The notes beneath the pieces were generated by a model. It was not told the origin of the DNA. It saw only the letters and a program-made list of their open reading frames with translations, and searched no databases. The position numbers and the translations under genes were made by a program. Shown here in pieces: positions 16,382 through 61,558 of a stretch of DNA of 64,000 bases. The stretch comes from Phaeosaccion multiseriatum (taxonomy: Eukaryota > Protista > Ochrophyta, other classes). Each line of letters begins with the position of its first letter. Position 1 is the stretch's first letter. The stretch is taken from assembly GCA_965112735.1 (NCBI GenBank), contig OZ218956.1:2232001-2296000 (forward strand), written 5' to 3'.

Positions 16382-16519
16382 GTTGGCTTGACAGAGACTG
16401 TTGAAGGGTCGCTTGCCGAGGCTGGTGATGCTGCTGAGGCTGCTGCTGGGGAGGTACACCTCCTCAGCATCAGTAGCTGCCTCAGCAAGCGACCCTTCAA
16501 CAGTCTCTGTCAAGCCGGC
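16382..16519. ncRNA. Long fold-back hairpin, candidate miRNA/siRNA precursor
   Basis: Arms 16385-16422 and 16479-16516 are reverse complements at 37/38 positions, with an inner stem TGCTGGGGAGG/CCTCCTCAGCA. Lies between the convergent HI0933 and NEK genes. Expression is unknown. Confidence 0.45.
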
Positions 16520-22274: not shown

Positions 22275-22598
22275 TCGACCCCAGCGATCGACAGCGAGGT
22301 TTCTCTGGCTTCTGAGCGTGTGCTGTGTGTGTGGCGTGTGTGTGGCCGTAGCCCCCTCCTGGCTTCGGGCTTCTGGCCGCAGGCTAGCGCTGGCTTATGG
22401 CCGCAGGCCAGACGGTTTGGCTTCTGGCTTCTCCGGCTGGGAGAACAAAAAGAATGGGGGGAGGGGGGGAGGGGCTCACTACTGTCCTGCTGACTTCTGA
22501 AGCCGCAGGCCCAGCCCCTGGCTTCTTGCTTTCGGCCGCAAGCCGCCTCTGGCTTCTGCTTATCGGGGGCCAGCCAGAGAAACCTCGCCTGGGGCCGA
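22275..22598. mobile_element. MITE-like element type A (TCGRCCCC ends; internal CTGGCTT doublets)
   Basis: Ends TCGACCCCAG and CTGGGGCCGA, plus a perfect 17-bp inverted repeat GCGAGGTTTCTCTGGCT (22294-22310 / 22572-22588). Internal units ctggcttctggctt…ggccgcaggc. No TSD seen. Confidence 0.65.
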
Positions 22599-22634
22599 AG
22601 AAAGAGATGCGCATGAGGTGGAGGAAACCTTTCT

Positions 22635-23278
22635 TCGGCTCCAGACTGGCCTAGAAGCCTATGCTCTAGGCCCTAGGCCGAGCGGCCTACGCCCGCTCTA
22701 GGCCTAGGCCGGCGGCCGTTGGCCGCTCTAGGCCGGCCATTTGTTCTCCCTAGGCCGGCGGTTCTAGACCTAGGCCTCGACCTATCTGATTAGTAATTAC
22801 GGCCGGCGCAGGGAGGGAGGGAGGGAGGGAGGGAGGGAGGGAGGGAGGGAGGGAGGGAGGGAGGGAGGGAGGGAGGGAGGGAGCGAGGGAGGGAGGGAGG
22901 GAGGGAGGGAGGGAGGGAGGGAGGGAGGGAGGGAGGGAGGGAGGGAGGGAGGGAGTCGACCCTGGACAAGATCATCTGATTGTGATTACGGCCGGCGCAG
23001 TCGGCCTGACTACTGAGTATGACCGGCGCCAGCCGGTCTGGTTGCTTACAGCCGGTGACCAGCCGGCCTATTTTCTGGTTACGGCCGGCGCACACCGGAA
23101 TCTTGTCCAGGGTCGATAGGCCTAGGCCGGGGGGGCTGCGCCAGAAATAGGCCTAGGCCGGGGACCTGCGGCCCCCTCTAGGCCTAGGCCGGGGGCCTGC
23201 GGCCCCCCTAGTCGACCCTAGGCCGGCCGAATTTCGTCTCTAGGCCTAGGCTTCTATTCTAGGCCAGTCTGGAGCCGA
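22635..23278. mobile_element. MITE-like element type B (22-bp TIR, CTAGGCC-rich), carrying nested element C1
   Basis: Perfect TIR TCGGCTCCAGACTGGCCTAGAA (22635-22656 / 23257-23278). CTTTCT direct repeat on both flanks. Internal ~30-bp units taggcctaggccgggg…ctgcg. Confidence 0.85.
22777..23116 (+). mobile_element. MITE-like element type C, copy 1 (core 22956-23116; duplicated left end and (GGGA)n tract 22811-22955)
   Basis: Perfect TIR TCGACCCTGGACAAGAT / ATCTTGTCCAGGGTCGA. Degenerate CTGATTA doublets with GGCGCCAGCCGG. TAGGCC flanks both outer ends. Confidence 0.85.
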
Positions 23279-23590
23279 CTTTCTGTGATGTGATTTGTAT
23301 TTCAGTATATTCCAACGGCTGGGGGAGGGAGAACGTTCTCCCCCTCCTCCACACACATGCCGCATGATAATAACGTCTCCAGCTGATCGTCGTCGAGAGT
23401 CCCTCGTCCCTCGACATCGGACAGCACAGCACAGCACCGCCGCCGGCGCAGAAAACCCCTCCCGCAAGTCGCGGCAGAGCAACAGGCAGGCAGGTAGGCA
23501 ACCAAGGTCAGCCCATCCGTCCGTCCGTCCGTCGGGCCTGTCCGCCACCCCCTCCCTCCCCCTCCCTCCCTCCCTCTCTCCTTCCCCTCC

Positions 23591-26500
23591 TCACTTGCCC
23601 GAGGTGGCTGCTGCCTGCTGCATATACCGCTCAATATCCGCCGCCCCGTGCAGCTCCTTCTCCGCCACCATGGTCTCCGTGGAGGCCACGAACCGTACCG
23701 TCCCAACTAACATCTCCGCCCCTGACGCCACAGGGAACGACTCGCTCTCCTCATGCATCCTACTGAGACGGAACCACGTGCCATTGGTGGACGGTTTCGA
23801 GGCCGTCCCGTCCAAAATCTCCAGGCAGTCCTTCTCTCCGTTGAACTCTACCCTTGCGTGCTCCCCGCTGATGCTCGAGTCGATGCCTGTGACGGTGCCA
23901 TTGACCTCCTGGCTAAAGGTGATGGTGTTGGCTTGCTTCCTCCCCAACGAGGCGCCAGACAACCCTACTTGGTACTCGCGGTTCTGAATGGGGGTGCCTT
24001 CTGGGGCGAAGCACCTTAGCGTCACAGACCGGTACCCTGCCTGCTTGTCGAGAGTATCGAGCCAATGAATGACACACGACCACACCCAAGAGAAAGGGGG
24101 AAACAATACGACAGCAAGGTATCGTAGCAAGAGGGGTTTAGTTGTCGTAGAAAGAGGAGTAAAACAAACAAAAAATAAAAAAAATGCTCCTCACACACTC
24201 ACTCCTCCTTCCCCCCCCCCCCTCGTCGCACTAGCAAAAAGAGCCCCCCCACAACGCCGCACGAACATAAAACGCGCGCCATAAACGGCTTCCATCCTCC
24301 TCTTACCGCCAGTTTCGCCTCCCGCGCTAACATCTGCTCCACCACCTTGGTATCGGGGGGAGGTGACGCCCTGCTCGTCTCCACCCCCCCTGCAGCAGCA
24401 GCCGAGTCTGCATCTAACAAGACAACGTCGTCGTCCTCGTCGGCCCTCTCCGTTCCAGACACAGTCCCCGCCGCCGCCCCACCCTCCTCGGATTCGGCCT
24501 CCTTGCCCGCCATCTCTAGCCCACCGTCTTTGGATCCGTCCTGCATGTCCCCCCCTCCCTCCTTCTCCTCCCCCCCCTCTCCACTCGGAGACACACGCGG
24601 GCCTCTTCCTCCTCTCCGTTGGGCCGATCCTTCACCTTCATCGTCATCGAGTCCGTCGTCGCTGGTGCGAGGAGTGCGCGCGTCTGCAGGGTTCTCCATG
24701 TCTCGAGGATGTCGCATCGTTGCCTGAGCCTGTGTGGGTTTACAGAGAGAGAGAGAGGGGGGGAGGGGGATAGGGACGACGGGACAGACAGAGAGAAGAG
24801 AGAGGACATTTAGAGAGAGACGGCTAATTTGGGGGGGGGTGGGGGTGGGGGTCGGCTTGTTCACACGGACCGACAGACAGAGAGAGAAGCAGCTTACAAA
24901 CAAACATACACACTGTCACAGAGACAAAAAAAAGACAACGCCGCGAAGGATAAACAGGCATGCACGCACGCACGCACCCCCCCCCCCCCCCCCACCACCC
25001 AGACAAGCTCTAGCCATGAAGAAAGGGAAGGAAGGAAGGAAGGAAGGAAGGGCACGACAAGCTCACACGCACCACAATCTCCATTCCACTGACGCCGCCT
25101 TCACTCTTGCATGCCGAGTCCTCATCCTCGTCGTGCTGGTGGCCGCGCTGTCCCTCCATGCCTTCAGCCCCAGTCCCACTGCTACCCTCACAAGCGTTCT
25201 TCGGCTCGGCTTGCTCCTCGGTGGTCCCTGCCTGCTCCTCACCGCTTGCCGCTTCGGAGACCACAAGCTGCGGCGACACACACACAGATTGGAATGGATG
25301 GGGGGATAAGGGAAGGGGGGGAGAGGGGGGGGAGACGACAGGGAAGGGAAGGCAAGGGGAGGGAAGAGAAGACACAGGTTTTGGGGGAAAGAAAAGAGGG
25401 GAGGAGGAGTATTCCACAGCGGTTCTGTACGGGGATGGGATAGTCACCAGCTTGAGACGGAGGTGAAAGAGAAGCGCTGTGATGGTGATGAGGGTACTCG
25501 AAGGGAGATGGGTTTGCTAAGGGGACAACCCTACGTATGCCTAGCGTGGTACTTAGCAATGAGAGGAAGGAGTAACGCACCTGATGCTTCCCCAGCATGA
25601 TCATCATCCCCGGGTGAAGAGGCTTGGGCGTCCCGTACGGTACGCGCACAAAGGTCCCACCTGCGGACCCAAAGTCCTGCGTTACAGCGACAGTTACAGC
25701 GACGGTTTCATTCGAGTATGTGAGGGGTCAGAGAGCGCGTGGAACAAGTACTCAGCAAAGGAGAGATTGAGGGGAAGTGCCAAGAGAACCTTCCTAAGTA
25801 ACAGTTAGTTGTTCCCCCCTCCCACTCTCTCTGGTGCTCTCTCCCTCTTTTGGAGGCGAAACAGACCACGCACCTTGAGAAAGAAGGTCTTCGACGACGG
25901 CTCGAACAATATCTCGAAGTGCCTGAAACAAGACATGCCGAGCGGGGTTGGGTTTGTACGGGTCGGGTAGGGCATGTACAGAGGGTACAGAAGGAGGTGC
26001 AAAGAGGGCGTGAGACGAGGGGTGGGGACCGACCATCCCAGACTACTCGGAGCAGAGCTAGGAAACGAAGAGACGAAGATGGTGGGAATAAATGGAGGAA
26101 ATGAGATGAAATGAACGGCAACCGACCCGTGAGCTGTGCAGCTTCCTCCCTGATCTACTACCTACCTGCGGCTGACGGTGGCGTCACTAAAGTGCATAAA
26201 GTCGCAACCATTCAGCACCGCTGGCTGCTTGCGTCCCCCGATGCAGCCACGCTCCGTCACCCGGAAAGACTTGCCGTTCCAATCACTTTCTACGGGGCCT
26301 AGGCACTTGAGGATCAGCACTTGCTCCTGCGGCGGCGGGGTAAAGGAATGTATACAGGTCGCAACCCAGTGGAGTTAGCTCGTGTCCATTCCTATGAACC
26401 CAAACAGTCTCTGTTGATCAAGTGCACGCACGCACACACGCAAACGCATGCACGCTTGTGCTTGCGTGTCTAGTTCTACTCACGGGTACGAGTGCGAACC

Positions 26501-27101
26501 GGTAAGGAGCATTGGGCCCATCGTCCTCGCCCTCCTCCTTGACATAGAGGCCCTCTGCGCCCTCCTTAATGAGATCTTTGATCAGACGCTTCAAGTTGTG
26601 GTTGGCCACCAGTAGCAGGTGGTCCATGGGTTGACCGGTCTGTTGGGGAGTGGAGTGGAGTGTGGGGCGGGGAGACGAGAAGGGGAGACGAGAAGGGGGC
26701 CTGAGGACGCAAGTTCATCCATATGACTAGGAATAGAAAAAGCTTAAAAAGGAATTAATGGCCGTTAGCCAACAGCTACCAGCACCCCCGCCGCCGTCAC
26801 TACGCAACCCTAAGGCAAGTTCGCCCTCGCCCCGCGCAGCCCTTCTTCACTCCCGCTTTTCCCTCTCGACCTCTCTCCCCCACAGCCTCCTCACGATTCG
26901 AAGCCTCCACTATACAAGGCTTTGTAGAACCAAACCCACCTTCGGAGAAGTGTCGTGGTTCCTCAGCCACATCTCGATCGCCTCCTTGTCGTATGTGTGG
27001 CCGTCTGCCGCTATCACAGGCTCCCGCATCAGCTCTCTCGTGATGGGGCAGGCAAACTCATCCCGTAACCGATGCCCCTTGACCAGCACCGGCTTCAGCA
27101 T
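23591..27101 (-). CDS. U-box + FHA + acidic linker + FHA protein (putative phospho-dependent E3 ubiquitin ligase); about 8 exons
   Basis: U-box [32 protein letters not shown]…TSPK|TGQPM…[11 protein letters not shown]1 IGGRK…DATVSR|RHFEI…LK|DFGSAGGTF…GMMIMLG. FHA2 SLGRK…[11 protein letters not shown]…STNGTWFRL. Confidence 0.88.
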
Positions 27102-27555
27102 GGTGCTTCCGCCGCTGGTCGAACCACCCCCTTCTCTCTACCCTCTCGGAATAGGGCTGAGCTCGCTGCTGGTCGCAAAAGGGTTGGTAATTGCTGCTGT
27201 TTGGTATACGGGCGGCGTGGTCGATCGTGGGCCAAAGCTTTCCCACCTACAGTGGTGTGTGGCTGGGCCAGCGGCGCAAGTCCACGCCCTGCGTGCACAA
27301 CACCTCCAAAGCCCGCCTCTATTCCTCCCACTTTAAAGCCCGCCTTGTGCTTCGAATACACCTCTCCTCTAGGGGGGGGAATACGTTTTTAAACCATTTG
27401 CCCCACGGCTTTCGTCGGCCCCTTTGGCGCTACGTAAGCGTCTCAAGACCTTCCCCTCCTACTTCCTCCCCGCTCTTCCGACGCACTCGCTCCTTTTCGT
27501 AGCGTGCCTATGGAGTTCTCTGCAGGCCGATTGCTAACGCGATTCCGGATCAGCA

Positions 27556-29435
27556 ATGTCATTTTTTCAGACGGCCAAGCAAGGTCCCCGGGGGAACGCG
27601 GGCTTTTTAACAACCCACTTCATCGCACTTTCTCTATTGTGGGTTGTGGGAATGCCGGCTTTCAAGCAAGATGCCACGGCCTCTGCCTTAGTAAGACAGG
27701 GAGAGCACCCTGAGACTAGTGGTCTCCTTGCGGTAGTCGGCTGGGGATGGGCCGCTGACTACTCCAGCAGCTGCTCGAACGAAAAGGAGAAGGACGGACA
27801 ACCTTCTGCTCAAGATCAATACGCAACGTTTTTGGCAGGGCTTGAGGCTCTCGGAGCCAGGACGAGGCACCACCAGCGCTCTCAGTGGAACGATGACAGA
27901 GAATCTGCTCCGAGTGGTGCACCGAGCAGCAGCGATGGTAGCAAAGCGAGGGACGGGGGGGAGGAAGATCGGGCGGGAAACGCAACCCCGCCCCCCCCGA
28001 GTTTGTTCCTTATGCAGGCGCCCCACCTGCATGTGACCGTTGCCACTCTCTCATCCTTCACGGACACCAGCAGCCCATTCTTCTACCTTGGGCCAGAGGG
28101 GAAGAAGCGGGTCGTCGAGGCATGGGGGCAGGCGCTGGAAGCAGCTCTCGAGCGTCGAAAGGAAAGGGAGGGTGCCATCTTCCCATTCGAGCTGACTATC
28201 AATGCCCCGATCCTCACGTCCAGCGCGGGCGTCTTTTTGCTCGAAGATCACGGACAGAACTTGGAGGCTCTGCGAAAGTGCGTTCGGGAAGCGGCTCAGG
28301 TACACAGTATTGCAGCGTTTCAGGAATCCTGCCGCCTTTGCGATTTGTTTTCTCGCTTAACCGTTCCTTGCACTACCGCCGGGATGTCGCTGCGATGCTG
28401 CTGCTCACAGGACCCAATCATTGAAGAGCTAAGTGATGAGCTGCTGAGGGAGGAGAAGTCGAAACGACAGGACGCAAGGAGCGGCGGTGTGCCTGGAGCA
28501 GTGATAAAGCCCCTACATGCGCTGCTCAAGGTCCCCAACATTGTGCACTCGACTTGCTTTCGGTCAGTCATCATTCATAGATCTGAAGCGCTTGCTCTCC
28601 CTGCCTTCCCTTGCTTCGGGAAGAGATGTTATCTGCATTTGCCTCGGTTGCCCCGTGTGCTCGGCTCGCCAACACTCTGTATGAATGTCATGTCCCCGTT
28701 TCATTTGCGCGAATGAACCATTCAGCTTTGCCGCCCCCGTGGAGAACTGTGAGGCCTTTGAACGGGACTTTATCGAGCTAAGTGCCCGGTGGAGACCCGT
28801 GAGGATACACGTCAGTGCAGTGCAAATGGTGCAGGTCGGTGCCGTGCAGTCTTCGAGAGAGGGGAAGGAAGGAGAGGAGGACCAGAAGGAGAGAGAGGAG
28901 GAGGAAGGGGGAAGGGGAAAGACGGAGTCTCGGAGGCTAGATGATCCTTTTCCTTTTCTTCCTTACTGCTACTTATTCCTTGGTTGCTGCTGCTCCTTCT
29001 GCTGCTGCTGCTCCTGAATCTCTCTCTCTTGGCCTTTCCTGTGCCGCGTCGAGCCGCCCCCCCCTTCGAATGGGCCGCACCCTATATTCCAACGTGCACT
29101 GTCATCGCCGCAATAATCGCTTTCAACGGCAGGGTTTCGGTTGCTGCTGCTGGCCTTGCTTACTACACTCTTCTGTGCTGTGTTCCTAACGCCCATCTAT
29201 GTGCCCCTCTCTCTCCGTTTCTCCCTTTCAATCTCCCTCGCCCTTTCTCTCTCTTCTTCTCTCCATCTATCTCCCTTTCTTCGCCCCCTCCCCTTCCTGT
29301 CCCGCCCCCCCCTCTGTCTGTCTCGATCCGCCAATGGCGCGGCTCCCTCCATTGCAGGAGTATCAACCATACATGCAAGTCTCGAGGGAGAGGGGGGAGG
29401 TCTGGTGCTTTCCCCCTGCTGCGCGAGGGACATGA
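27556..29435 (+). CDS. 2H-phosphoesterase superfamily protein; exons ~27556 (or 27652)-28299, 28411-28562, 28726-28834, 29358-29435
   Basis: Two Hx[ST] motifs, PHLHVTVATL and PNIVHSTCFR|F. In-phase GT-AG junctions, ending EYQPYMQV…TGA. Confidence 0.7.
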
Positions 29436-30182
29436 GTCCTCAAGTGCAGAGCAGGAGTTGGCTTGCTGGCCTGCAGTGACACTTGAGCACGCCGACCACA
29501 CTATTGCGAAGAGCCGACCTTTTGCGACAAGATAGACCGAGCGAGCCTACCCCCTTGTACTACACCCACCCGACGGTGCCCGGGGTCTTTACTGATTTAT
29601 ACATTGTAGGATGTGGGGAGGAACGACTGAAAAAATATAAGATACACACAAACAGCAGTGATAGTGTGGTGTGTGCAGAAAAAGCCCAAAACATGAATCT
29701 ATTGTATTACTTTACTTCACCGCTTCTACCCTTTCCCTTGGGTCCCTTTGGACTCTACCGCCGTCGCTAAGCCCTCCTTGTGGAGCAAGCGAGAGAGGAC
29801 ATAACATGCCCCTCTCCCGCTAGTCTTTGCGCCTCCCTCCCCCCAAGCCCCTCCCTGTCTTATCGCCTGCTCCTGCCCCCCGTCCCCCTCTCTGTGGCGG
29901 TGGAACAAGTTGCAGCGTGTGTTGGCGCATCTCTGCACCACCCGCATGATCCAACTACCACAAGATAATCAATGCCCAACCCGCCACCCACCCACTCATG
30001 CGCAGTGGTGGCCTCTCGTGCCCTCTTTCCCCTCGCCCGCCTTCTCCATCCCTGCCAGTGGCGGCTGCTGTCTCGCTCCTTCCGTGTGTGTGCGTGTCGC
30101 TCTGCTGCCGTCACATGTGTTTGGTCGGCCCTTCTATGCAAGCATCGGCCTGACCGCCCCGTCGGTGGGCCGCACCGCACGT

Positions 30183-30449
30183 CTATGCAATGAGGAAGAA
30201 AGACCCTGGCTCGCGGTCACGACTCTTGCCAAACTGTCTTCGGATGACCACCGCCAGGGAGCAGAAGAAGACGGAAAGACAGATGAGGATGAGCATCAGC
30301 CGAATGTAGTTGGTGGCGAAGGGCTCCAGGGTCTGGTTTCGGATTGTGCCAATGCCATCGACCAATTGGTCGTTACTGGCAGCAGCGAAGCTGAGCAGCG
30401 CCATGAAGGCCGCCATGAAAGTAACACATGCGCTCGCCTGGAGTCCCAT
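30183..30449 (-). CDS. Small (88 aa) single-pass membrane protein with signal peptide
   Basis: MGLQASACVTFMAAFMALLSFAAA-S signal, an NQT sequon, TM helix LMLILICLSVFFCSLAVVI, then basic RRQFGK. No homology recognised. Confidence 0.45.
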   Translation of the reverse strand: MGLQASACVTFMAAFMALLSFAAASNDQLVDGIGTIRNQTLEPFATNYIRLMLILICLSVFFCSLAVVIRRQFGKSRDREPGSFFLIA

Positions 30450-31447
30450 CTTGCTAGTGTAGTCGAATATTGTGTGTTGATCTGTCGGTGTATGCGAGTA
30501 GCAGTACAGCAGCAAGAGAGGCAACCGGCAAAGATGGAGATCAGATCACGGGGCCCTAATTTGTATGCGAGAGCGAGAGAGCGAGAGCCAATTTGTATGC
30601 GAGAGCGAGAGAGCGAGAGGAGGAGGCTCTTCGCTGCTGTTGGATACGTGTCCAACTTTAGCCCGCCATTGCTGCTTACGCTCCTTCTCTTTCTCTTTTT
30701 CCTCCTTTACTCTCGCCTGCTCTCGTGGTGATACCCACAAGCTCCCAGAAGGGCCAGCTGGTGATGTGGATCATACCGACAGAGGTAGTAGCACCAGTTA
30801 TACCCGCATCAGCACCGTACACGCGCAGCGGCAGCAGCGACAGGCAGTGTGCCCTCTGCTGTGAGGGCGGGCAAAAGACACCGCTCCTTTTCTTCCCGTG
30901 TTCTTCACGACTTTCCTCCCCAAAGCCCGGACCCTCTCTGACCATTCCTCAGCCTCTCCTCTCTGAGGAAGGGCGCAGCTCCCCCCCTTTCGTCCTCCCC
31001 CGCCACGCTGCTTACCTCTCGTTCGTGAGCAGAAAGTGAGTACGCCGTTGTTCACAAAAAGCCAGCAAAAAAAAAGGCGGCGGCTTCGAAACCGAGTGGA
31101 CGAGTGCGTACACATATATGTGAAAATTTCCGTTTCACCTTGATAGCACAACTTTATGCGACGGTTTCACGTTTCAGTCTTTTCCTTTTTCCCTGTTATT
31201 TCCCCCTTACTTCCTACTTGTCCTTTAAAGAGGGAGGGAGGATCTACTTTGGCTGCGCGGAGTAGTGCTTAGCATGACAGAGCAGGAGATACTGCCCACA
31301 AGGGAGGAGGATCCCCTTTCTGGGAAATCTAAGGTGCAATTCTCGCTCACGTACGAAACATGTCCTTCCCTCCTCCCTCCTAAAACCCTCCTCCCCTCCA
31401 CCCTCCTCCCGGCTCTCGCTCCCCCTCTGCCTGCCCAGCAGGGGACG

Positions 31448-33929
31448 ATGTCCTCAGCAACTTCTTGGTGGGATAGTCGAAAGCATAAGATCACGCCCGC
31501 CCCCTCTACTGGACGACAGAAGAAGACTCAGACTCCAAGACGTAAGGTCAACTCCAGGAGTCTTTCCGCGCCTTTCCGCGTCCTCGAGAACAATAGCTCC
31601 ATTGGTAGAGAGGTTATGGGTGGGGTTTTGGGGTGGATGAGCATCGTGTCATCCCTGCCCTTCTATGTCCGGCTCTTTATTGGATCGGAGGTAAGCGGAC
31701 AAGGTCGTGAGAAGTCATCAATGCTCGAATTGTTGTCTGCCTTGTTGTTTGACCAATCCTTCCTCTGTGGTACCCTCCCAGACGTACGATATAACAGCAA
31801 CGGTCCAGCTATACCTTCTCTTTGCGGGCCTGGCTACGATTGGCCTGGGGCTGTTGTTCAACTTGCCCTTCGTCATCGCCCCCAGCGTGGTGTACGCAAC
31901 TAGTGCAGGAAACTATGGTGCAAGCTTTACCCTCGGAGGCACGCTTGCTTCGCAGTTTCTCGGCAATCTTTTGTGCGGCGGGATCATGGTTCTTCTCTAC
32001 ATGACGAATGTCCCAATTCTGAGGCTGTTGTCCTCTCCTTTGCGCATTGGCATCGGTTGCGGGCTCTCCATACTCATCGCCATGCTTGGGCTCCGAGGAA
32101 TGGGAATCCTCGAGAGCAACAGCTTTACTCTCCTGCCCCTCGACTGGCCTCCGGTGCTGGGAATGGTGGTTATCGTCATCAGCTTCGTTGACAACATTAC
32201 CGGTGTGAAGAAGTGGGTACTGGCGCTCGGCATACCCCTTCTCATCACTCTCATCATCTACGCCGTCAAGTACTCGGAGCTGTACGACGGTTTCACGCAG
32301 CTTGGAGGCGCTTGGCATAGCATGGACAAAGGGACACTCACTGCCGTAGACTTCGACGACCTCAAGAACGAGTCCAAGTACTTTGTCTACGTGCTGTCCA
32401 CGGCCACGTCGCTTCTCCTCAACATCTCCTCCTGCCTTCTCATTTTGGTGGACTCCACTTGCTTGGATGGCATTCGGAGTGTTTCCAACGTCACTGGGGC
32501 TTCTCCCGAAATTAGTAATCTCATAGGTAGGTGATAGTTAGTGGGTTGGTCCAACATGAAATAGGATAGGTTCCACTCGCCGGGGGGAGAAGGGGGGGGG
32601 GACCATTACACAAAACTATCCATGAAAGGAGTAGGCACCTCCTCTAACTCTAGCCCTACAACCCAAACCCATTGCAGGCGCATCAACAAAGTTTAGGAGC
32701 ATCTCTCTTTACACTGTGCTTTGCGGGGCTCTTGGGAATCTTTTGGGCGTCTCTTCACCGGCCATCTTTGTTCAGGTAGGGCGTACGTGTGCTTGTGTGT
32801 GTGTGTGCGTGTGTGTGTGTGTGTGTGTGGGTGCGTGTCAGCGTGCGTGTGGGTGTGTGCGTGTGGGTGGGTGTGGGTGGGTGTGTGGGGATGGCTGTGT
32901 CCGATAGCAGAGAGCAGATACGGAGGAGGAGTTTTGGAGTCTCTGTGTTCGCTTGCTCGCTGATTGCGTGGCTGCTGGCTTGACTGACATCTCGGAGTGT
33001 CTTGTGTTGCGTCCCCTCCCCCTTCTCTGCCCCAGAGCATGATATGCATCTTCGCCGGAGCACGCACAGGCTTGTCGGCCGTTGTCACCGGAGGGCTCTT
33101 CATCCTGAGTGTGGGGTTGTGGCCCCTTCTCCCCATTATTGCCCCCAGCCACATCACTGGCGCACTCACCGTCATCATCGCACTGAGATTCTTCCCAAGC
33201 ATTGGAAGGCTGAGCTTTGCTCGTCCTGTGGACTGTCTGGCATTCGGGATACCGCTCATGCTCATACCCCTCACGTAAGTACTACGTAAGAACCTTTGTG
33301 GTGTTGCCCGACACCGCGTCGTTACATCATTACATCCGCCCCGCATCGAGCGACAAGAATGAGCGTATCGCACCACCTCTCATCCCTTCACTGGTGCTCC
33401 TACCACGCGCAGGCTTGACTTTGTATCCAGCCTTTCTCTCGCCGTGGTGTTGGTGTATCTCACGGAAAGGCTCGGCAAGTACCTGGGCGCTGATGCATTG
33501 TCGTCTCTCCTCCGAGACATGGCATCAGTCCGCGACCGGGTCACGGTGTCCCGCCCGCTGTCGTCAGCCCACCGCCGGTTCTCGACAATGAATATAATGA
33601 CGCCGATGCCGAATGGACGCAAAGACGCTGAAGTACCAACAGAGCAACCGGTGCAGGAAAGTGAAATAACAACCACGCAACAGGGCGGCTCTGACCTGCC
33701 ACTGAGGCAGAGTCCTAACCCAAGCAACCCAAGACTCACACTGTTAGCGCCAGGAAGCGAAGGGAAAACCGGTAGTACATCACCTCCAGTGGGAACGGGG
33801 AGCAAGACCATCGGTACTACATGTATGCCCGGCACGGAGGAGGAGGCGCCGCGATCAAAGCAGGAAGTCCCCTTCTTACTGGCCATTGTCGCTCTCACTA
33901 CGCTCATCTACAGGGCGTTTGAGGACTAG
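31448..33929 (+). CDS. Divergent AzgA-like (NCS2) nucleobase permease; 5 exons
   Basis: FRVLENNSSIGREVMGG, LFNLPFVIAPS, PLRIGIGCGLSILIAMLGL, LGVSSPAIFVQ|SMICIFAGARTGLSAVVTG, APSHITGALTVI and multiple TM helices. Confidence 0.8.
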
Positions 33930-34128
33930 TGAAATGATATCGTTGTATATATATATATGGCAAGTACAAAGTCGGTGACGACCAGACGTCAACATGGTGG
34001 ACGGATGGCAATGGATGGCCAGGGCAGCTGGCCTGCCCCCCTATTGCATTTTAGGGCCTTTTTCTCTTCGTCGTGGATGAGTACTTGCTCCACCTCTCCC
34101 TGTTGGAGGGAGGTCGAAGCGAGGGGAG

Positions 34129-36902
34129 TCACCTCCGCTTCTTGTTGTCGGAGGAAGGGTAGTCACCTCCGCTAATGGCAGAGAGCCACATCTTCTTCCT
34201 CTTCCTCTGCTGGGCAGACAGAGCTGTACTTGTGGCGCCCTCGCCCCGACCCTCGTGCTTGCCCTCGCCCTCGCCCCCGTCAAGCCTGCTGCTCGTAGCA
34301 AGGGGCGGAGAAGGGCCAGAGAGCCGTTTCTCCTCTTCCTCGACTCGGAACCCTCCGCCACGATGGGTGCCACCACCAGCAGCAGCAGCAACAGCAGACT
34401 CGGGGTATCCGCTCGAGAACGAAGAGTAAAAAGGAGCAGAAGGAGGAACGGGGGCCCTCCTGGGGGGGGGGTTGACGAACACATCAGCAGTGGGCCTACC
34501 AGCAGCCGTCGCCAAGGTGGTTGCCAGCAAGTACGCCGTGAATGGGCTTGCCAATGCCGGACCTCGCCTTGGTGCGTCCTCCCACCGCTGCTGCTCCTGT
34601 AACAACCGGTCGGACACAGCATGGGCAGACTCAGACGAAGCAATGGCATCCCCCACCAGATCGAGGCCGGAGCGAGGACGGCCAGTAGCAGTATACTCAT
34701 GCTGGGGACGTGACGGTGGCAGGCTACCGCGGCCACTGCCCGGTCCATGCCACCGCCGCGCGCCTTCCTGCCATTCTTCCCCTCTGTGTAGTTGCTGCCA
34801 TGGCTCCTGCTGCCGCCGCCGCCGCTGCTCTTGCTGCTGTTGCTGCTGCTGCTGCTGCTGCGGCTGCCATTGTTGGTGCTGCCAATGCTCCTCTTCTTGT
34901 CGCTGCCAAGTCGCAGCGGCAGTCCCACGCCAGTGGAACACATTACCTTCTCGGTCCTCCTCCTCTCTAGTACTGCCCTGACGATAGCTGTCTCCCCTGC
35001 CGTCGCTGCCCTGTTCGCCCCCCCTTCCTCTCGATTCATGCCAAGGATGGTGTAGAGGAGGAGGAGAGCTGCTGCTCGAGAAGGGGCGGGGGGCGAAGTA
35101 AGGAGGGGGACTGTGAATCTGCGGCACGTACTCATGCGGGGGCGTCAATGACTGGGGTCCAGAGTCAGCCGAAGAAGCCTGCCACTGACCCCCTGCGGCT
35201 GCGAACCCGCTACCGCTGCCGCCGCTGTTCTTGCCGCCGTTGTTGCTGCTGCTCGCAATGGCGGTGGTGATAGGAGAAGCACGCAGTCCTCGGGCGGCAC
35301 TTGGCCCGGCGCTGCCTTTCCCACCACTCTCACCAACTTTCTTATTGGCGAGGAGGGATCCGTGCTCGGCGCAAAGGCCGAGTTTCTGAAGGGAGAGAAA
35401 GGGTTCGTACGTAAGCGGTAGTGGTTAGAGAGAGTGGCCTTGGCAAGTGCGCCAGCAGAAGAGTCGTCTATATGCGCCTCGCGGCTTATCCTCATTGGCT
35501 TTTGGCTGACCGAGTGGACTCGGACTCGCAAGAAGCTTGCTGCCTCCTCGTAGCCTCTGGCCCAGCGGTGTATCCTCCCTCCATGTGCCTTTGCCTTTGA
35601 GGCGTCTCCGCCAACACAGGCCCCCATCCTCCCACCCGGACCGTAGAGAGCGTCTCTGCCCCAGCTGTTGTGCGAATACAGTGTACGGAAACGCACACAC
35701 CATGCCCGCAAGCAAGCGAGACCACCCCTCTTTAAGAACGCACAGCACCCTGTTTCTCACCTTTGCGTACTTAGTACAGCCCGTGTGCGAGCAGCGCTTT
35801 CTCACAGCTCCTGTAGCATCGGTATGAGGAGTGAGGTAGTAGCAACAGAGGGCACGCAGAAGTCATTTCTTCATTCATTCCTTGGTTGTTGCTTGGGCGG
35901 TCTCCTTACGTCAGAGCAGCGACTTGGCTGGCAACAGTGACTGACTCACCATGCATGATACACAACCCTCCCTGCTGCACGTACTTATGGCAGCCATCCA
36001 CTTTGCAGCGGTTGCTCTTGACAACTCCCTGGAAGTGGGCCTTGCACAATCGAGCGTGCTGTGCGTACTTTGAACACCCTTCCCTCGAGCACATCTTGGT
36101 GGTAATGACGGCTCCTACGGGGGTTGGTACATCACAGCAAGCAAGCAAAGGAGGAAAAGGGGGGGGCAGCAGTATTGTCAATGCTTTCGAACCAACCATT
36201 CCATGGCTTCGACCCCTGACGCACGATCCGCTATCCGCTATCCGCTACCCGCTATCCACTATCGCCGGCGCCAGCCGGCGCGCTATCCGCTATCGCTGGC
36301 GCCAGCCGGCACGCGATCCGCTATCGCCGGCGCCAGCCGGCGCGCTATCCGCTATCGCTGGCGCCAGCCGATCCGCTATCCGCTATCGGCCGCCGGCCGA
36401 TAGTGCGTCAGGGGTCGACAATGGCTGGCCGCTCGTCCGCTGGTGATGACTTACCGTGCCGCATGCACCTGCCCCCCTGAATGACGTGCTTGTTACAGCC
36501 TTCGACCATGCAGCGCTTGCTCACGACTCGTGCGCCGTGCCTGACACATAGCCGATTTTGAACGACTTGGTTGCTGCATCCGGCTCCATCCGGCCCTTGG
36601 TAGCTGCACCTTTCCCTCTTGACCACTGCCCCGTGCGTCCTGCACACGCCCCCCTGCTGTATGTGCTTGTCGCAGCCAGGGTGGCGACACCGTCGGATGG
36701 GGGCACCATGTCGAACACACAGCCCGCCCTGTACCACGGAGTTCTTACACCCCTCAATCCGACACAGCTTCGCCTTCCTCTTCTTGCTGGTACTTTTGAC
36801 CGAAGCGGGCGGAGGGCCTTGTTCATTGGCGCTGCTGCCGCTGCTATTGAGGTTGACCTGCTGGTGGTGGTCGTCCTCCTTCTTGTTGTTGTTGTCTGCC
36901 AT
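34129..36902 (-). CDS. WRKY19-like CCCH zinc-finger repeat protein (7 fingers) with a Gln/Ser-rich C-terminus; exons 36902-36455, 36114-35950, 35810-35761, 35385-34129
   Basis: Seven C-x3-GC-x9-C-x2-H units (finger 3 has a longer first spacer). The last finger is completed only by splicing KYAK|KLGLCAEHG. Basic KKRK and RKRKK motifs. Confidence 0.85.
36209..36418 (+). mobile_element. MITE-like element type D (CCGCTAT repeats) inside intron 1 of the zinc-finger gene
   Basis: Perfect 16-bp TIR TCGACCCCTGACGCAC. Flanks CCATGGCT / CAATGGCT. Internal units ccgctatccgctatcgccggcgccagccgg. Confidence 0.85.
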
Positions 36903-36951
36903 CGTCTCTGCGCGGCTGGGCGGAGGGCTCTACGGCATCGAGGAGAGCTGC

Positions 36952-36989
<38 letters not shown>

Positions 36990-37770
36990 TGGTGCTGCTT
37001 CTGCTGCTGCTGCTGCTGCCGCTGCTGCTGCTGCTTCTCTCTTGGATACGGTGCTCCGCATTGCACTAATTAGCTTGGCCGGAGTGGGTACAAGGCCGCC
37101 TTGCCCCCCCCTAGGACGCTTTCGCGACTCTCTATCCGATGGTTAAAGTCCAGGGTGGACGTCGCTCGCCTAGAGCCTCTGCTCTTCTTCACTCAGCATT
37201 CCTTCACAATCGCTTCTCTCGGTCGTTATAAGAAATGGTGAAGGAATCAAGCCAATTTCGTTTTGCCGGCGCTCAGCTGCATTGAGCTGCCAAGAGGATA
37301 CCTCCTCGGTTCTTCTCTCTCGGCGACGATAACGGTTGAGGCGACCCTCTGGAGCTGCTACGCGGCTTCAGTCAGCAATGGTCTGCCCTCGCAGAGGAGC
37401 GCAACAGAATCAATTCATTTATTATTTAGTTGTTGGGTCCGACGGCGGCGCATTGCCCTTTTTGCGGCCGCAGAGTTTTTCAGTTGGAGTTTTTCCTCTG
37501 GGGGGGTTGTGACAGGCTGCTTCCCCGACCGTGCCCCAACACCTTTCCTCCCATTCCCCTCTTATGTGCCCACAGCCAGCCATACCTAGCTAGGTAGTAC
37601 ATGAGATGGAAAAAATGATAGAGCCGGGGAACGAAGAAGTCAAGAAGAAGTGAAAAAAAATCTGTTGAGGGGGGTTTCTCGCCCATCCACAGCCGGCGAG
37701 TGGTGGCACGGTTAGGCTTTTTTGCACCAACAGCCACGCCAGCAGTTTCACTGACGGGGGCGCCCGCCCG

Positions 37771-38006
37771 TCGACCGTGGACAAGATTATCTGATTACTG
37801 ATTACGGCCGGCTGGGTGACCGGGGCGGCCGGCGCCAGCCGGCCTGATTACTGATTATGGCGCCAGCCCGAGGAAATGGCCTGCGCCAGCCGGCCTGGTT
37901 GCTGATTACAGCCGGTGACCAGCGGCCTGATTACTGATTATGCGCCAGCCGGGGGCTGATTACTGATTACGGCCGGCGCACACCGTAATCTTGTGTCCAG
38001 GGTCGA
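37771..38006 (+). mobile_element. MITE-like element type C, copy 2
   Basis: Ends TCGACCGTGGACAAGATTA / TAATCTTGTGTCCAGGGTCGA. GCCCG on both flanks. Repeated CTGATTACTGATTA + GGCGCCAGCC units. Confidence 0.85.
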
Positions 38007-38080
38007 GCCCGGGCATGATCGGCCAAGCCGCCGGTTGCGTCGGCATCAACGATACGTGGGAAAAGCAGCCAGAGTCATAT

Positions 38081-38147
38081 CCGATAGCGGATAGCGGATC
38101 GGCTGGCGCCGGCGATAGCGGATAGCGGATAGTGCATCAGGGGTTGA
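38081..38147 (-). mobile_element. Truncated inverted copy of the type D element
   Basis: (GATAGCG)n and GGCTGGCGCCGG, then a decayed end GTGCATCAGGGGTTGA versus GTGCGTCAGGGGTCGA in the intact copy. Confidence 0.75.
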
Positions 38148-38854
38148 GAGCGATGGGCGCACTGCCTGACCGAGGGAACGAAGAAACGAGGGGTGTGCTG
38201 GCTGCAGCGCAGTTGAAATATTCCCCTCTCCTCTTTTCGTCGCTCTGCCTGGCCTGCCTCGCTCTCCCTTCTCTGACTGCCTGCCTGCCGGCCGGAGCCA
38301 GCCAACCAGCTCCAGTTGCAGTCCAGAGCAGGAGCAGGCAGCTACCCTTGCTAGTGACCACTACCAGTCAGGGACACTAGTAGGGGAAGGGGCTGAGCGA
38401 GGAAAGAAGGTAAGAACAAGGAAGGGATGGGGCCTTGGATTGGAATGGGCCTGCCTGTTCTAGTAGTTGTTGAACAATGCTATGCATGGAGAACCAACAA
38501 ACCAATGTAAAAATATGCGATTCATGTACCTCTCTACGCTCCTACGCTCCTCTTCTCTCCCATCTATTTCTCTCTTTCTACTCTCTCTCAACTAAATAAA
38601 TAAACCTTGTTTTAATCCCAGCCCCGCACCCCTCTTGTCGTGAGAGGTGATGCCCTCACTCCCCTCACGCCCCCCACCCACGCCCCCCTCTCTCTTCTAC
38701 TCGGCCACTCGGGCCATTCGATAGCTGCTCCGACATCGCCCCCCTGACTCCTCCCATAAATACCCTGTGGGGCTGCTGCCTACCACGTGAAGAAGCCTCG
38801 TAGTAGTGCTAAGCAAGAAAGCAAGCAAGTAAGTACGTACATCCACCCTGCTCT

Positions 38855-41800
38855 CTACTTCTTCGTCGGGTCGATATTGCTGCCGCTGGACGGATCGTCG
38901 ATTCGAACCGGAGCTCCGAACATACCTCCGAAGAGCCCCCCCGTGGAGGGTTGAGGGGAAGGCGCCTTTGCTGGAGCTGGGGCTGGTGTTGACGCTGCTG
39001 CTGACTTGGGTTTGGCCTTCTCCGCTGCAGCTTGCTGTGCCGCCCGCTTCTTCTCCTTCGCTGCTTCAGCCAACGCCTGCCGCTTCGCCTCGGCCGCCTC
39101 CTTCTTCTGCTGCGCTGCATCAGCTATGGCCTGCTTCTTCGCTCGAAGCTCCTCCTCCTTCCTCTGCTTCAGCTCTACGGCCTGCTGCTTCTTCGCTGCT
39201 GCCGCATCAGCCAATGCCTTCTTCTTCGCTGCTGCATCATTCACACCAGACGATGCAGGTGACTCATCGTTTGGCGCTGCTGCGAAGCCAGGCACTGCTC
39301 GGGTGATCATCTCAGCGAAGGATGGGGAACGGGGGCGTTCAGGAGCCGGAGCAGGGGCACGCACAGGAGGGGCCGAACGGGATGGTACCGGTGATGGAGA
39401 CCTTGACGCCGCTGCTTGCTTCTTCTTCTCGGCCTCGGCCTCCCTCTTCTCCTTCAGCTCTGCGGCCTGCTGCTTCTTTGCCTGAGCTGCTTCTGCCAAC
39501 GCCTTCTTCTTAGCCTCGGCCGCCTCCTTCTTTTGCTGCGCTGCATCAGCCAACGCCTGCTTCTTGGCTCGAAGCTCCTCCTCCTTCCTCTGCTTCAGCT
39601 CTGCGGCCTGCTGCTTCTTTGCCTGAGCTGCCTCAGCTAACGCCTTTTTCTTCGCCTCAGCCGCCTCCTTCTTCTGCTGCGCTGCATCAGCTATGGCCTG
39701 CTTCTTGGCTCGAAGCTCCTCCTCCTTCCTCTGCTTCAGCTCTGCGGCCTGCTGCCTCTTTGCCTGAGCTGCATAAGCCAACGCTTTCTTTTTCGCCTCG
39801 GCCGCCTCCTTCCTGAGCCTTATCCCCTCGGCAACTCTGTCCTTCTGCGCCTGCAACGCGTTTGCCTTTGCTGATGCAGCATCCACCTCCTGCTTCCCTG
39901 CTGCCCCCAAAGCCTGCTTCAACTGCTGGGCCTTGTTCCGCTTCTTTCTGTCATCCTTCTCCGCTTGCTTCTTGGCCTCGTCCTTCTGTAACTGTAGCCT
40001 TTCGGCCTTGGCCTTAGCCGCCCGCGCAGCCTCTCTCTGCTTCCTCTCTGCGATCACAGCTAGTTTCTGCCTTTTCGCCTCTGCTGCCCTCGAAGCCTGG
40101 GTCTGCTTTCTTGACATGGCCTTGGCAGGGGAAGCAGATGCCGCTGCTTTGGGCGGCGAAGGGGGAGCAGCAGCACCACGAACGCCCTCGGCTTGGGTCG
40201 ATGGGGCGGCTGTCTTTATCTCTGTCGGAGCCGCACCAACGACAGGGCGTTGGGAGGGTGTTGTTGGTGCTGACGCAGATGATGCTGCTGCTGCTTCTGC
40301 GTCTGCTTCGGCGGGTGCGGGTGGCTTGCTTGGCGTTGCCGTCTTTGCTGAAGAGGCTCCAGAGTCGAAGAGAGAGAGGACAGGCTCTGGGATCTTCGCC
40401 TTGACGGAGTCCACTGCTCCGTCCACGGTCTGTTGAGTGTTGGACGTTGAGGCAGGGTTTGGTTGGATGGGCGACCAACGGGGAGATTGGGGAGGCAGCG
40501 GGGAGGAGTGGCAGAGAGAGAGAGAGAGAGAAGGAAAGGTGGGTGCACTGAGCAAGGTGGCTTCCTTCTTTCCTTCCTTCTTTCATTGGAGGCATACGGA
40601 CGAGTGGAGGAGGCAACTTGGGGGAGGGGGGGTTTGCTTTGCCCCTCCTCTCCTCCGCAACCCGCACGAGCGAGCACACCTCACCCACGCATCACGCACA
40701 CACATATACACACACCCACGCGCCCACGCACCCACGCACCTAACCCTCCACCCCCACCCTCATCCTCACCTTCTGCGCTTGAGTGGCAGCTTTGGAGGGC
40801 AGCTTCTGGGCCTCTGCAGACAAGTCGCTGGCCTTGAGGGACAAGAGCTTCTGAACAGAGCCCGGGATGGCCTTTACGTCCGCCACTTTCGCTTCGACTG
40901 CCTCGGTTGTCGCCGCCACCTTCGCTTCGACGGCCTCGGTTGTCGACTGAAAGATGGAGAGAGGGAGGGATGGCAGTGGATGAATGAGGGGACATGCCGG
41001 GGCAAGGGAGAGGGAGAGAGACCTCTTGAATGGTTTCGGATAGCTCGCGAGAGTCTGCACCATGCGAGGCCAAAATGAAGGAGGGAAGAGAGGGTAGGTG
41101 CGGTGCCCCAGCTCCACACTCGATTGAGTTCTCTACGATTCATGTGATGGCACACCCCTCGCTCCGCCTCGCCTCGCCTCGCCTCGACTCGACTCTTCTC
41201 AACCAGCGAACCTGTTGGGCCTTTTTGATGCTCTCGGCGATGGATGCCTTGGTGTTTTCGGGTAAGGCCTTGATGCTTGCCACAGTGTCGTCCGCCTTTT
41301 GCTTCAGGCCTGCTTGCGTGTCCTCCGCCTTCTTCTTCAGGGCGGCTTGAATGTTCACCGGAATGGCCTAAATACATCAACATCATCATACCGGGCAAGC
41401 AAGAGGGTGGCACGCCGCAAAGAAAGGAAAACAACGACAACGGACATGAGATGAGCATCCAGACAGAAATGATGTGTATCGCCCCTTCTCCCCTCCTCCC
41501 CTCCTCTCGTTCTCTCCTCCGCCCTTCCTATAAGGCTACAGGTCGATAAAGCCGTGAGACACTATACTCCTTGCTCTCTCCTCCTCCTCCTCCTCCTCCT
41601 CCTCCTCCTCCTCCTCCTCCCCCTCCTCTTTTTCCTCTCCTCTTCGTCCCCCTCTTCTTCCTCTTCCGGTTCGTCCTCCTCGTCCTCCCCCCCCCCCCTC
41701 CTCCTCCTCCTCCTCCTCTTCCTCTACACTCTACTTCTTGCTATCTCCTCCTCATTCTCCTCTTGTTTCCTCTTCCCCCTCCTCTTCCTCCTGCTCCTCC

Positions 41801-43649
41801 TCCTCCTCCTCCTCCTCAGAAAAGAGCGCATCTTCCAAGTACTCTTCTCTCTCTTGCCTCCACCTCTCTCACCTTGATGGAAGCCACGGTATCCTCAACC
41901 TTCTTCTGAGCCGAGGCCGCTGCGCTCTCTACTGCGTTGGTGGCTGCGTCCGTGATGCCCTTCCCTGTCGCCAGACTCGTCTGACCCAAGACACTCCTCG
42001 TCACCTCTCCCACCTGGGATGGATGAGTATTAAGATATGACATCAACGCCACATAAGAGGGGATCAGGGGTCAACGCACTGCCCCATCCGATGGTTTGTG
42101 GCGTGGGAGGAGGGCACAAGCCCGTGTCTCTACCTCTTCTTTCCCTCTCCCATTTCTCTCGGAGCAAAAGTCCCGTTCAAATCTTTGCCCAACACACACA
42201 TGAAATGCTCCGAAGCCATGGAAACGGAAGGTTCATTCCTTCCGTCTGTCGGCGCCGGTGGTCACCCGCGCTTGACATGATCCTCTCCCTCTCTCCCTCT
42301 CCCTCTCCCCCTCCCCCTCTGTCTGCAGTGTCCCCATCACCCTCTCCCTCTCGGTCTGTCGTGTCCCGGTTCTCCCTCAATCCCTCTCCTCCTCCCTCAA
42401 CACATGCCCTCACCCCCAAAATTCAAATTCCAACTCACCTGCCCTGGCTGCTGAGCCGCTACATACGCAATGCCTCCCAGAGCCACCGCCCCCACCGGGG
42501 ATGCCCAAGGAGCACCCCCCCCCGCGAAGGCCCCATCGGCTAATCCTCCCGCCACGAGTCCGACGGTTGCCGCCCCTGCCGCTGATGCGTACGTGAGTGT
42601 CTGCTTCTCCTGGACGGCGGCCACCTTGGCATTTGCCTCTTGCTGAGCCTGCTGCTGAGCCTGCTGAACCTTTTCGCTCTTCTGGGCCTTCCGGCGGGCG
42701 GCCTCGCTCTCCTCCTTCTTTGAAATGACAGCCTCGAGTTTGCTTTGGTCGATCTCACCTTTTTGTTTTTGGGGTGTGTGAGTTGTGGCGCGTAAGGGGA
42801 GGGGGAGGGGACCGAAGAGAAGGAGGAGTCGGTGGAGGGGAGGGAAGAACAGTAGGGAGTGTGGAATAGGATAAGTCGGGGCGGGCTTTAGAGATGGCAG
42901 ACATTGCTCCTACGGTCTGTTCAACACATCACAGCATTTGCGTATGTTCCTGCCCCGATGAGGCTGTATATCCCTTCCAAAGGAACTCAACGCGTGCGCC
43001 CGCACCCGCTCACCTCTTGCGAACTTTGACACTGCCTCCTTCACGGAGTCGTCCCCGTCATCGCCACCCCCGGCACCCGCACTCAGGGGAGTGAGACCAC
43101 AGTTGTATGTAGGTATCCTCCTAATGCCAAAGGGGTCCAGAGAGAGAGGGAGAGAGATATAGAGATAGAGAGAAAGTAAAGCGGGGAAGGAGGAGAGAGA
43201 GGGAGAGAGAGAAGAAGGGAAGGAGGTGAGAGGAGGAGCCAATGCGAGTGAGCACATGACGATAGGGGAGTTGGAGGAAAGGAAGGAGTATATGATCCCC
43301 ATCGCACAATGTGCTTTCCCTTTCATTTCCTTCTGCAATAATGAGCATCATCGAAGAGACAAAGTCCAAAGCCACATATGCTGTTCGTGTTATCTCCCAA
43401 TTGGCTCTGCTTTGCCTTCGCAGCCTCCATAGCCCCTCCCCCTCTCCTCCTTCCCTTTCCTCCCTCCCCTCTCCTCTCGTACCTGCTGCCACCCTGTAGC
43501 TCCTTCTGCTGCGGTTGCGGCCGTCTTGCTGACCGCCCTCCAATTGTAGAACTGGCAGCATGCCGAGGCAAACCCCTCCCCCCAGGCGAAAGGTTAAAGC
43601 CCTCGCCGGGCACTGCGAGAAGCACCGCGAGGAGAAAAGCTGGCCTCAT
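38855..43649 (-). CDS. Plastid-targeted membrane-anchored Ala/Lys/Gln-rich coiled-coil repeat protein; exons ~43649-43482, 43120-43014, 42758-42439, 42013-41873, 41367-41212, 40946-40770, 40429-38855
   Basis: Signal MRPAFLLAVLLAVPGEG-FNL plus transit peptide. Gly/Ala hydrophobic hairpin, amphipathic (V/T)ASIKA(I/L)P repeats, 40-aa/120-bp repeats AEAKKKALA…KQRKEEELRAKKQA. Junctions are in phase. Confidence 0.8.
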
Positions 43650-43853
43650 TTTTTCTTTATAATTGGATCTGATTCAACCGCTGCACAACGGCAACCACTA
43701 ACGCACCCCTCTAAACCACCATTCCAGCAGATATGTAAGGGCAGAGCAGGCGGCTGAGCAAAAAAAAAAAAAAATCGCGGCTGGACGCATACGTCGTCCC
43801 ATGACTTATGAAATATATGTATATGATTACGTAATTTATTTCCCACTTGTCCG

Positions 43854-44117
43854 TCGGCCCTCGACAAGGTTACAGTGTGCACAAATTAGTTAGATCAGTA
43901 ACAATAATCAGGCCGGCCGGCGCCAAGAATCAGTAATCAGGCCGGCTGGTGCCGGTCATAATCAGTAATCAGACCCGGCTGGCACCGGCCATAATCAGTA
44001 ATCAGGCCCGGCTGGCGCCATAATCAGTAATCAGGCCGGCTGGCGCCGGCTGCAATCAGTAATCATGCCGGCTGCGCCGGCCGTAATCAGTAATCAGATA
44101 ACCTTGTCCAGGGCCGA
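43854..44117 (-). mobile_element. MITE-like element type C, copy 3 (inverted; variant TIR)
   Basis: TCGGCCCTCGACAAGGTTA / TAACCTTGTCCAGGGCCGA (18/19). About 6-7 units of TAATCAGTAATCAGGCCGGCTGGCGCC. Confidence 0.85.
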
Positions 44118-44128
44118 TCGGACGAGGA

Positions 44129-44213
44129 TCGGCCCCTGAGGCGACCTCGCCAGCGGGCCAGGTTCCAGGTTACTGGGCTGGGTCGCCTCAGAACCTTGTC
44201 AGTCAGGGGCCGA
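44129..44213. mobile_element. 85-bp MITE-like element type E
   Basis: TIR TCGGCCCCTGA, exact 7-bp flanking direct repeat ACGAGGA, internal CCAGGTTCCAGGTT doublet. Confidence 0.75.
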
Positions 44214-44650
44214 ACGAGGAGGCATTGTGCGGCACCTTTTTATTTCCTTTCCTTCTTTTTTTTTATGATGTGGTGTCATGACTATGATACAAAGGCATCT
44301 ATCTTGCCCAATAAAAAGAATAACCCCGCCTCTAACTGACCCTCTCCTCTGCTCCGTTTGGAGCGTGTATCCCTCCCTCCCGCCTCTCTGGTCTCGTCTC
44401 TTGCAGCTCCAAGCCACAGGACTTCGATACCCCCCCAATCACACGTTCTCCCTCGGGCATAGCCCGGGGAAGAGTCTCGTCCCACACTTCCTACCTCCCT
44501 CCCTCCCTGCCCCCTCCCTGCCTCCCTCCCTTCCACACACACACACACGGTTCCACATGCTCACACACACACACACACGTACACACACACGTCTTCTCGC
44601 TTCTGCCGGTCGGGGCCCTACCCGTCCATTCCTTCACTAAAAAACAGCCC

Positions 44651-61499: not shown

Positions 61500-61558
61500 T
61501 CGGCCCCAGACACGCCCCCCCTAGCGGCCTTGGCTCTAGGCCTAGGCCGCTCTTCCGA
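61500..61558 (+). mobile_element. Fragment related to type B element
   Basis: Begins TCGGCCCCAGAC (type B: TCGGCTCCAGAC) and contains CTCTAGGCCTAGGCCG. No right TIR. Confidence 0.55.

Follow-up and report, generated by a model that had tools for sequence, protein, structure and literature searches.

TCG-ended miniature elements in the window

The stretch analyzed here, a window of 64,000 nucleotides from Phaeosaccion multiseriatum (contig OZ218956.1, positions 2,232,001 to 2,296,000 of the forward strand), carries a group of short sequences, the TCG elements, which share a TCG-type end and contain a 6- to 7-nucleotide motif written twice in succession. They are real, multicopy, formerly or still mobile miniature inverted-repeat transposable elements (MITEs). 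An original prediction, made from the sequence alone, listed nine elements or fragments in five types (A to E), and every one of them is present where it had been placed. The elements and their associated features are as follows, in window coordinates, with terminal inverted repeats abbreviated as TIRs and target-site duplications as TSDs.

22275..22598, plus strand: type A element, 314 bp without its scar, with imperfectly doubled CTGGCTT and no TSD
22282..22297: excision-like scar in the left TIR of A, CAGCGA + TCGA + CAGCGA
22635..23278, plus strand: type B element, with a 288-bp core, a perfect 22-bp TIR and doubled CTAGGC
22629–22634 and 23279–23284: the 6-bp TSD of B, CTTTCT
22777..23116, plus strand: C1, a type C element nested in B, made up of a damaged left end, an (AGGG)36 run and a full short C copy
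22956–23116: C1b, this full short C copy, with a 17-bp TIR and an apparent 6-bp TSD, TAGGCC, which is ambiguous
23206..23221: excision-like scar within B, CCCTAG + TCGA + CCCTAG
36209..36418, plus strand: type D element, with doubled CCGCTAT, in intron 1 of a WRKY19-type zinc-finger gene
37771..38006, plus strand: C2, a type C element with doubled CTGATTA and a flanking 5-bp repeat, GCCCG
38081..38147, minus strand: D fragment, one end and two doubled motifs, the second TIR being lost
43854..44117, minus strand: C3, a type C element and member of a high-copy family, with no TSD and with flanks that form a short inverted repeat
44129..44213, plus strand: type E element, with a single doubled CCAGGTT and a 7-bp TSD, ACGAGGA
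61500..61556, plus strand: B-related fragment, the 12-bp core of the end plus one doubled CTAGGC, no partner end

The elements measure 85–320 bp, with arrays of doubled motifs that run one way across the element. Two entries need qualification: the type C end predicted at 22777 is present but partial, with 11 nt of the TIR missing, and the fragment at 61500, predicted as type B, resembles B only moderately (local score 38). In the interval 22777–22955, the damaged C left end (22777–22811) is followed by a 146-bp (AGGG)n run and then by C1b, possibly a composite that captured a microsatellite. A large composite element spanning 36209–38147 was also considered and was rejected, its flanks showing no TSD.

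Shared ends and terminal inverted repeats

Alignment of 16 ends gave a 12-bp end common to all types, TCGRCYCYDGRC, beyond which conservation between types falls; the predicted TCG-type end conserved across types is thereby borne out. All 16 ends start with TC and 15 of them with TCG, and none has the CA-type terminal bases of the P superfamily. The window holds 12 copies of the 12-bp core, 11 as element ends and one at the scar in B. The paired TIRs expected of MITEs are present, and they are exact in B (22/22), C1b (17/17), D (16/16, or 23 nt at 91%) and E (11 nt), with C3 matching over 19 nt at 95%. The TIR of C2 matches at 7/8 and then has a 2-nt insertion in the right arm, and that of A pairs over about 26 nt with one 1-nt gap when a 10-bp insert is taken out of the left arm. 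The right TIR of E carries a 4-nt duplication relative to its E relatives; without those 4 nt the E end is nearly that of C.

These pairings are far above the chance level. Four TCG-ended pairs with a match of at least 14/16 lie within 1 kb of each other, vs a mean of 0.017 in 60 block dinucleotide shuffles. Mostly these same elements were also returned when the window was scanned for inverted repeats in an unbiased way (12-bp exact seed).

Doubled motifs, spacers and 31-bp arrays

Within the window, exact doubled motifs are confined to the elements; in A, the doubling is always imperfect. Each type usually carries a degenerate copy of its own motif in the inner TIR as well, at about positions 11–22 (GCACTAT in D, CAAGGTT in E, AAGATTA in C, CTGGCT in A, and GGCCTAG in B). 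The first complete doubling in C and D begins at position 20–21, at one end only, and the array is unidirectional; this start at one end makes the two ends asymmetric. The array period is exactly 31 bp in D, 29–33 bp in C3, and mostly 31 bp in A and B. The spacer said to be common to C and D is confirmed, i.e., the two types have a nearly identical spacer of 17–18 bp with different 7-mers. In C2 and C3 taken together, 8 of the 12 doubled motifs are exact, the spacers vary in length and sequence, and the number of units differs among C copies. The predicted layout of a doubled motif plus a spacer therefore stands, but the predicted period of 27–31 bp does not; it is 29–33 bp, with a mode of 31.

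Target-site duplications and flanks

Inspection of the junctions revealed exact TSDs for B (6 bp) and E (7 bp), as is expected of MITEs. At five sites other than B, E, and the scars, the TSDs are blurred or absent: the apparent 6-bp TSD of C1 is identical to B's own motif and is therefore weak evidence, C2 is flanked by a 5-bp repeat, D is flanked by 8 bp with one mismatch or by 6 bp with a 2-nt filler, and no TSD was found at the junctions of A and C3. Compared with the 7–8 bp of the P superfamily, E has 7 bp and D possibly 8 bp, with 6 bp in B and in both scars.

The flanks of C3 (43846–43853 and 44118–44126) form an inverted repeat (7/8 with a one-base offset) that resembles a shortened C-type end; it may, for instance, have arisen through a template switch from one TIR to the other in the course of gap repair. 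The flanks of A show a weaker, 4-nt version of such an inverted repeat. It was also observed that the right flank of A is the reverse complement of the B TSD and that the 36 bp between A and B (22599–22634) start with AGAAAG and end with CTTTCT.

Excision-like scars

Two instances of a 6-mer repeated on both sides of TCGA were found in the window, vs 0.06 expected per shuffled window. Both are within TCG elements, which make up 3% of the window (joint probability, about 0.001), and deleting 10 bp at the scar in A restores the left TIR. A third scar-like word, at 58628–58641, has 5-bp repeats around TCGA and is at chance level (0.3 expected). The simplest reading of the two scars is that a TCGA-ended element inserted with a 6-bp TSD and was lost later; for the scar in A, a partial duplication of the end plus a 3-nt deletion is a further alternative.

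The scars keep both TSD copies and four element bases, and they fit a staggered cut that leaves element bases at the donor site. The 2-nt stagger of Tc1/mariner elements would produce the same scar. P excision junctions retain the TSD and terminal element bases, often joined at microhomology of the TIR into the TSD (PMC2895639), and P cleavage is made with a 17-nt stagger, with internal binding sites that are asymmetric (PMC7776569). hAT excision, on the other hand, proceeds through hairpins on the flanks, alters the TSD, and does not leave element bases (PMC1978519), and piggyBac excision is seamless (PMC7351741). Scars with intact 6-bp repeats and TCGA thus do not fit either of these two routes. 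They fit loss of the P or Tc1/mariner type and not of the hAT type, and they are independently compatible with a P-related lineage.

Copy number, spread and nesting

Contigs of the likely source sample were placed on 43480–44480 (n = 2,877). Their summed depth, which is not a copy number, was 42–50 on the unique flanks, 57,000–98,000 over most of C3, 27,000 in the last bin of C3, and 550–3,250 over E. The only reading of this kind that we draw from depth is that C has hundreds of copies or more and E has tens. At 44117, exactly where C3 ends, 17 contigs diverge, with an agreement of only 0.43, indicating many different C flanks. C and E are accordingly dispersed, multicopy, short, and non-coding, and the window itself holds three C copies and two D copies. 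Single-copy status, the outcome that the original prediction named as fatal to it, does not apply to C and E in view of the contig depth and the divergent flanks. No joint that skips a whole element is present among the contigs shown for this 1-kb interval, the contigs from other samples being without flank coverage.

A second study that bears the same organism label yielded pieces of C and E, as did a plant metagenome, and a metatranscriptome yielded pieces of C; the metatranscriptome and the plant metagenome suggest a related alga in these environmental samples. Pattern scans (TIR or array) of metagenome, viral, and prokaryote collections returned nothing or chance matches without a partner TIR or arrays, the metagenome pattern being too short. 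Four loci near EF3 in other stramenopile assemblies (78 kb) contained no convincing TCG-ended element, in an amount of DNA too small to speak for absence.

The elements are frequently found in or next to one another. Among the loose contig ends are C ends that abut motifs of type B and one C end that falls within an E copy. Of the 11 insertion events in the window, 3 are inside other TCG elements (P 0.004–0.024), and three more pairs are <75 bp apart. Such nesting and close pairing make self-targeting or shared hot spots likely.

Genomic setting

The window is eukaryotic, with about 58% GC and many microsatellites. An EF3-like ABC gene (1529–4960, minus strand) has 74% identity to Chrysoparadoxa, Choristocarpus, and Ectocarpus proteins, with no near-identical protein among the matches, which places the host among the ochrophytes, close to brown algae. 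The coding-like open reading frames (ORFs) are host genes. As predicted, no transposase turned up in the window: a Pfam scan of 40 window ORFs, not exhaustive for short decayed pieces, gave no match to a transposase family. A CxC6 match was rejected; it is weak, below the cut-off, and falls on WRKY19 zinc fingers. The gene at 35600–36902 (minus strand) contains many WRKY19-type zinc-finger repeats, with D located 30 bp inside its intron 1. The remaining four clusters are located about 300–900 bp upstream of the nearest predicted gene starts, a placement that may merely reflect short intergenic spaces. No tRNA and no Rfam family were found in the window. Other features observed are listed below.

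10674–11417, plus strand: exon of an HI0933-like flavoprotein (Pfam E 4e-25)
14107–14844: purine-rich minisatellite, 27-bp unit, 27 copies, 94% match
16385–16516: hairpin with 32-bp exact arms, not TCG-ended, with no TSD and no Rfam match
39439–39812: 141-bp and 54-bp repeats in a lysine/alanine/glutamine-rich ORF (38855–40555, minus strand) with no Pfam match

Proposed mechanism and alternative explanations

That the TCG elements are MITEs of a DDE transposon is, in our judgment, very probable. We lean, with less assurance, toward a fuller reading in which they are MITEs of one cut-and-paste DDE lineage that are moved in trans and likely P-related. To a similar degree, we favor a divergent P-like transposase as the partner enzyme, and the doubled motifs are plausible candidates for its sites, somewhat better than an even guess. 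With such an enzyme, the group would be a new lineage within a superfamily already known. The lineage is probably undescribed, its ends matching none of the superfamily signatures checked.

Briefly, a transposase provided in trans would read the conserved 12 bp with its catalytic part, and a separate DNA-binding domain would read the doubled 6- to 7-mer. A spacing of 31 bp corresponds to three helical turns and could place the sites on one face of the helix, an arrangement suited to a multimer. Staggered cleavage, with no flanking hairpin, would leave 2 nt or more from either end of the element on the donor, and joining of the broken ends through TCGA, which is self-complementary, would then produce the scar. 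As the binding domain diverges, the motifs would come to differ from type to type while the spacer stays shared. The idea in the original prediction of one non-autonomous group with a conserved end and a type-specific motif is supported by the common core, the motif in the inner TIR, the C/D spacer, the copies, the TSDs, and the scars; its further proposal, a diversifying motif as the recognition site, is borne out as far as the motifs are type-specific, and binding remains putative.

Several points weigh against a P-related lineage of mobile elements. P elements have an 8-bp TSD and CATG ends and the P-like elements of Ectocarpus have a 7-bp TSD and CAAGG ends, whereas the TSD here is mostly 6 bp. 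A and C3 are without TSDs, and the duplications at C2, D, and C1 are imperfect or ambiguous. The contigs on 43480–44480 showed no empty site, and contigs of other samples lack the flanks. In addition, host slippage between the terminal TCGA repeats, which reach 1 and 4 nt into the TSD, could likewise have produced the scars by deleting the element, since TCGA is palindromic and the two ends are also direct repeats.

The MITEs might also belong to a hAT-type lineage (hAT6/hAT7-like) with deviant ends, the arrays serving as BED-type subterminal sites. hAT elements typically combine short TIRs with subterminal arrays, and both such arrays and TSDs within 5–8 bp are found here. hAT lineages with 5-, 6-, and 7-bp TSDs are known (PMC12730594), and the inverted repeats that flank C3 and, more faintly, A are reminiscent of hairpin products (PMC1978519). 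The scars, however, keep intact 6-bp repeats and TCGA rather than a flank-hairpin footprint (PMC1978519), and the hAT elements of Ectocarpus end in TTGGC and CACAC and have an 8-bp TSD, so that we regard a hAT origin as improbable. A TIR-bearing offshoot of Dada (PMC3706591) or KDZ agrees in TSD length, which is 6–7 bp in Dada and 7 bp in Kyakuja, but Dada and Kyakuja are TIR-less and these elements carry TIRs, Dada inserts in small-RNA genes and the window has none, and the KDZ elements of Ectocarpus have 8-bp TSDs and mostly GGG ends; this origin is very improbable. Somewhat less remote, although still doubtful, is that these are MITEs of a separate undescribed superfamily, with the P likeness of the putative partner reflecting only the general RNase H fold, or with the 6-bp types using an enzyme other than that of the 7-bp type. 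The unmatched ends and the coexistence of two TSD lengths agree with such a separation; against it, the Repbase rule, which asks for an equal TSD length and similarity over the first 11 bases, groups the 6-bp types, and E shares the 12-bp core and nearly the TIR of C, which suggests one lineage. The elements could, finally, be real MITEs in which the 31-bp arrays are a neutral minisatellite expansion and the TIR alone matters. Tandem units do homogenize without selection, the unit number of C varies, and E has only one doubled motif; yet the period is the same in four types whose motifs differ, the inner TIR again contains the motif, and the 8 of 12 exact doublings in C2 and C3 persist despite variable spacers. 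Neutral arrays are thus about as improbable as the hAT origin, if not slightly more so.

It is possible, though on balance unlikely, that the TCG elements represent the non-autonomous arm of an undescribed clade at the superfamily level, with a shared cleavage end, at least five switches of binding specificity in one genome through exchange of the doubled motif on a constant 31-bp scaffold, and preferential insertion into each other's arrays. If so, they would offer a natural set of orthogonal transposase-end pairs. With five motifs on one scaffold in one genome, the co-divergence of transposase and site that ends cross-mobilization becomes directly testable, and the scars provide a genome-wide, experiment-free read-out of the cutting chemistry. 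The surprise is limited, since poorly studied genomes commonly contain MITEs whose ends are unclassified, and Galileo is a precedent for the design principle.

Comparison with known systems

Terminal bases and TSD length are the basis on which non-autonomous DNA transposons are classified. The TCG ends with a 6- or 7-bp TSD are unmatched among the signatures checked, and the group therefore probably needs its own entry. The earlier remark that the TCG termini could not be matched to a superfamily is upheld to the extent that they differ from the ends of P, IS3EU, CMCT, KDZ, Dada, and the hAT elements checked. IS3EU is similar in its 6-bp TSD with TIRs, but its ends are TAYGG, which is not found here, and its TIRs are >30 bp. 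The CMCT group (CACTA, Chapaev, Transib, Plavaka) has mostly CA..TG ends with a 2–5-bp TSD, and KDZ has an 8-bp TSD with complex ends (Ectocarpus) or a TIR-less 7-bp form (Kyakuja); neither combination is present in the TCG elements. hAT6 and hAT7 are alike in a 6- or 7-bp TSD, a short TIR, and subterminal repeats, and differ in end sequence and scar type. Dada is alike in its TSD range of 6–7 bp and its presence in ochrophytes and differs in being TIR-less and in targeting small-RNA genes, neither of which applies to the TCG elements. A literature search, which covered few subscription papers and neither Repbase nor Dfam, did not find the TCG-end signature or any transposase with an inserted propeller.

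The curated DNA transposons of Ectocarpus include no TCG-ended family and none with a 6-bp TSD (PMC12477816 suppl. 3). The nearest among them are P-1/2/3_Ec32, which are from a related host lineage, have a 7-bp TSD, and are tentatively P-like; the curators flagged them as a likely new clade (PMC12477816 suppl. 3). Unlike the TCG elements, they have CAAGG ends and TIRs of 36–39 bp. The inner TIRs of C3 and E also contain CAAGG, possibly by chance.

The closest parallels are P and Galileo. In Galileo, experiments show that the outer 40 bp are conserved, the binding sites are in tandem repeats, and binding is subfamily-specific with weak or no cross-binding (PMC3688188). The TCG elements resemble both systems in a short conserved outer end, and their scars would fit an excision that leaves the TSD plus end bases. 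Binding sites are located in the TIR region in each case, asymmetrically in P, in tandem repeats and subfamily-specific in Galileo, and putatively in the TCG elements; the terminal 4-mer is self-complementary in P (CATG) and in the TCG elements (TCGA). Unlike P, the ends are TCG rather than CA, and the TSD is mostly 6 bp; in addition, the arrays run one way across the short element rather than lying in long mirrored TIRs. Judged from these sequence features, the TCG elements are not filed under P, given their terminal bases and an enzyme that is only predicted, but they would appear to work in the way of P/Galileo-type MITEs.

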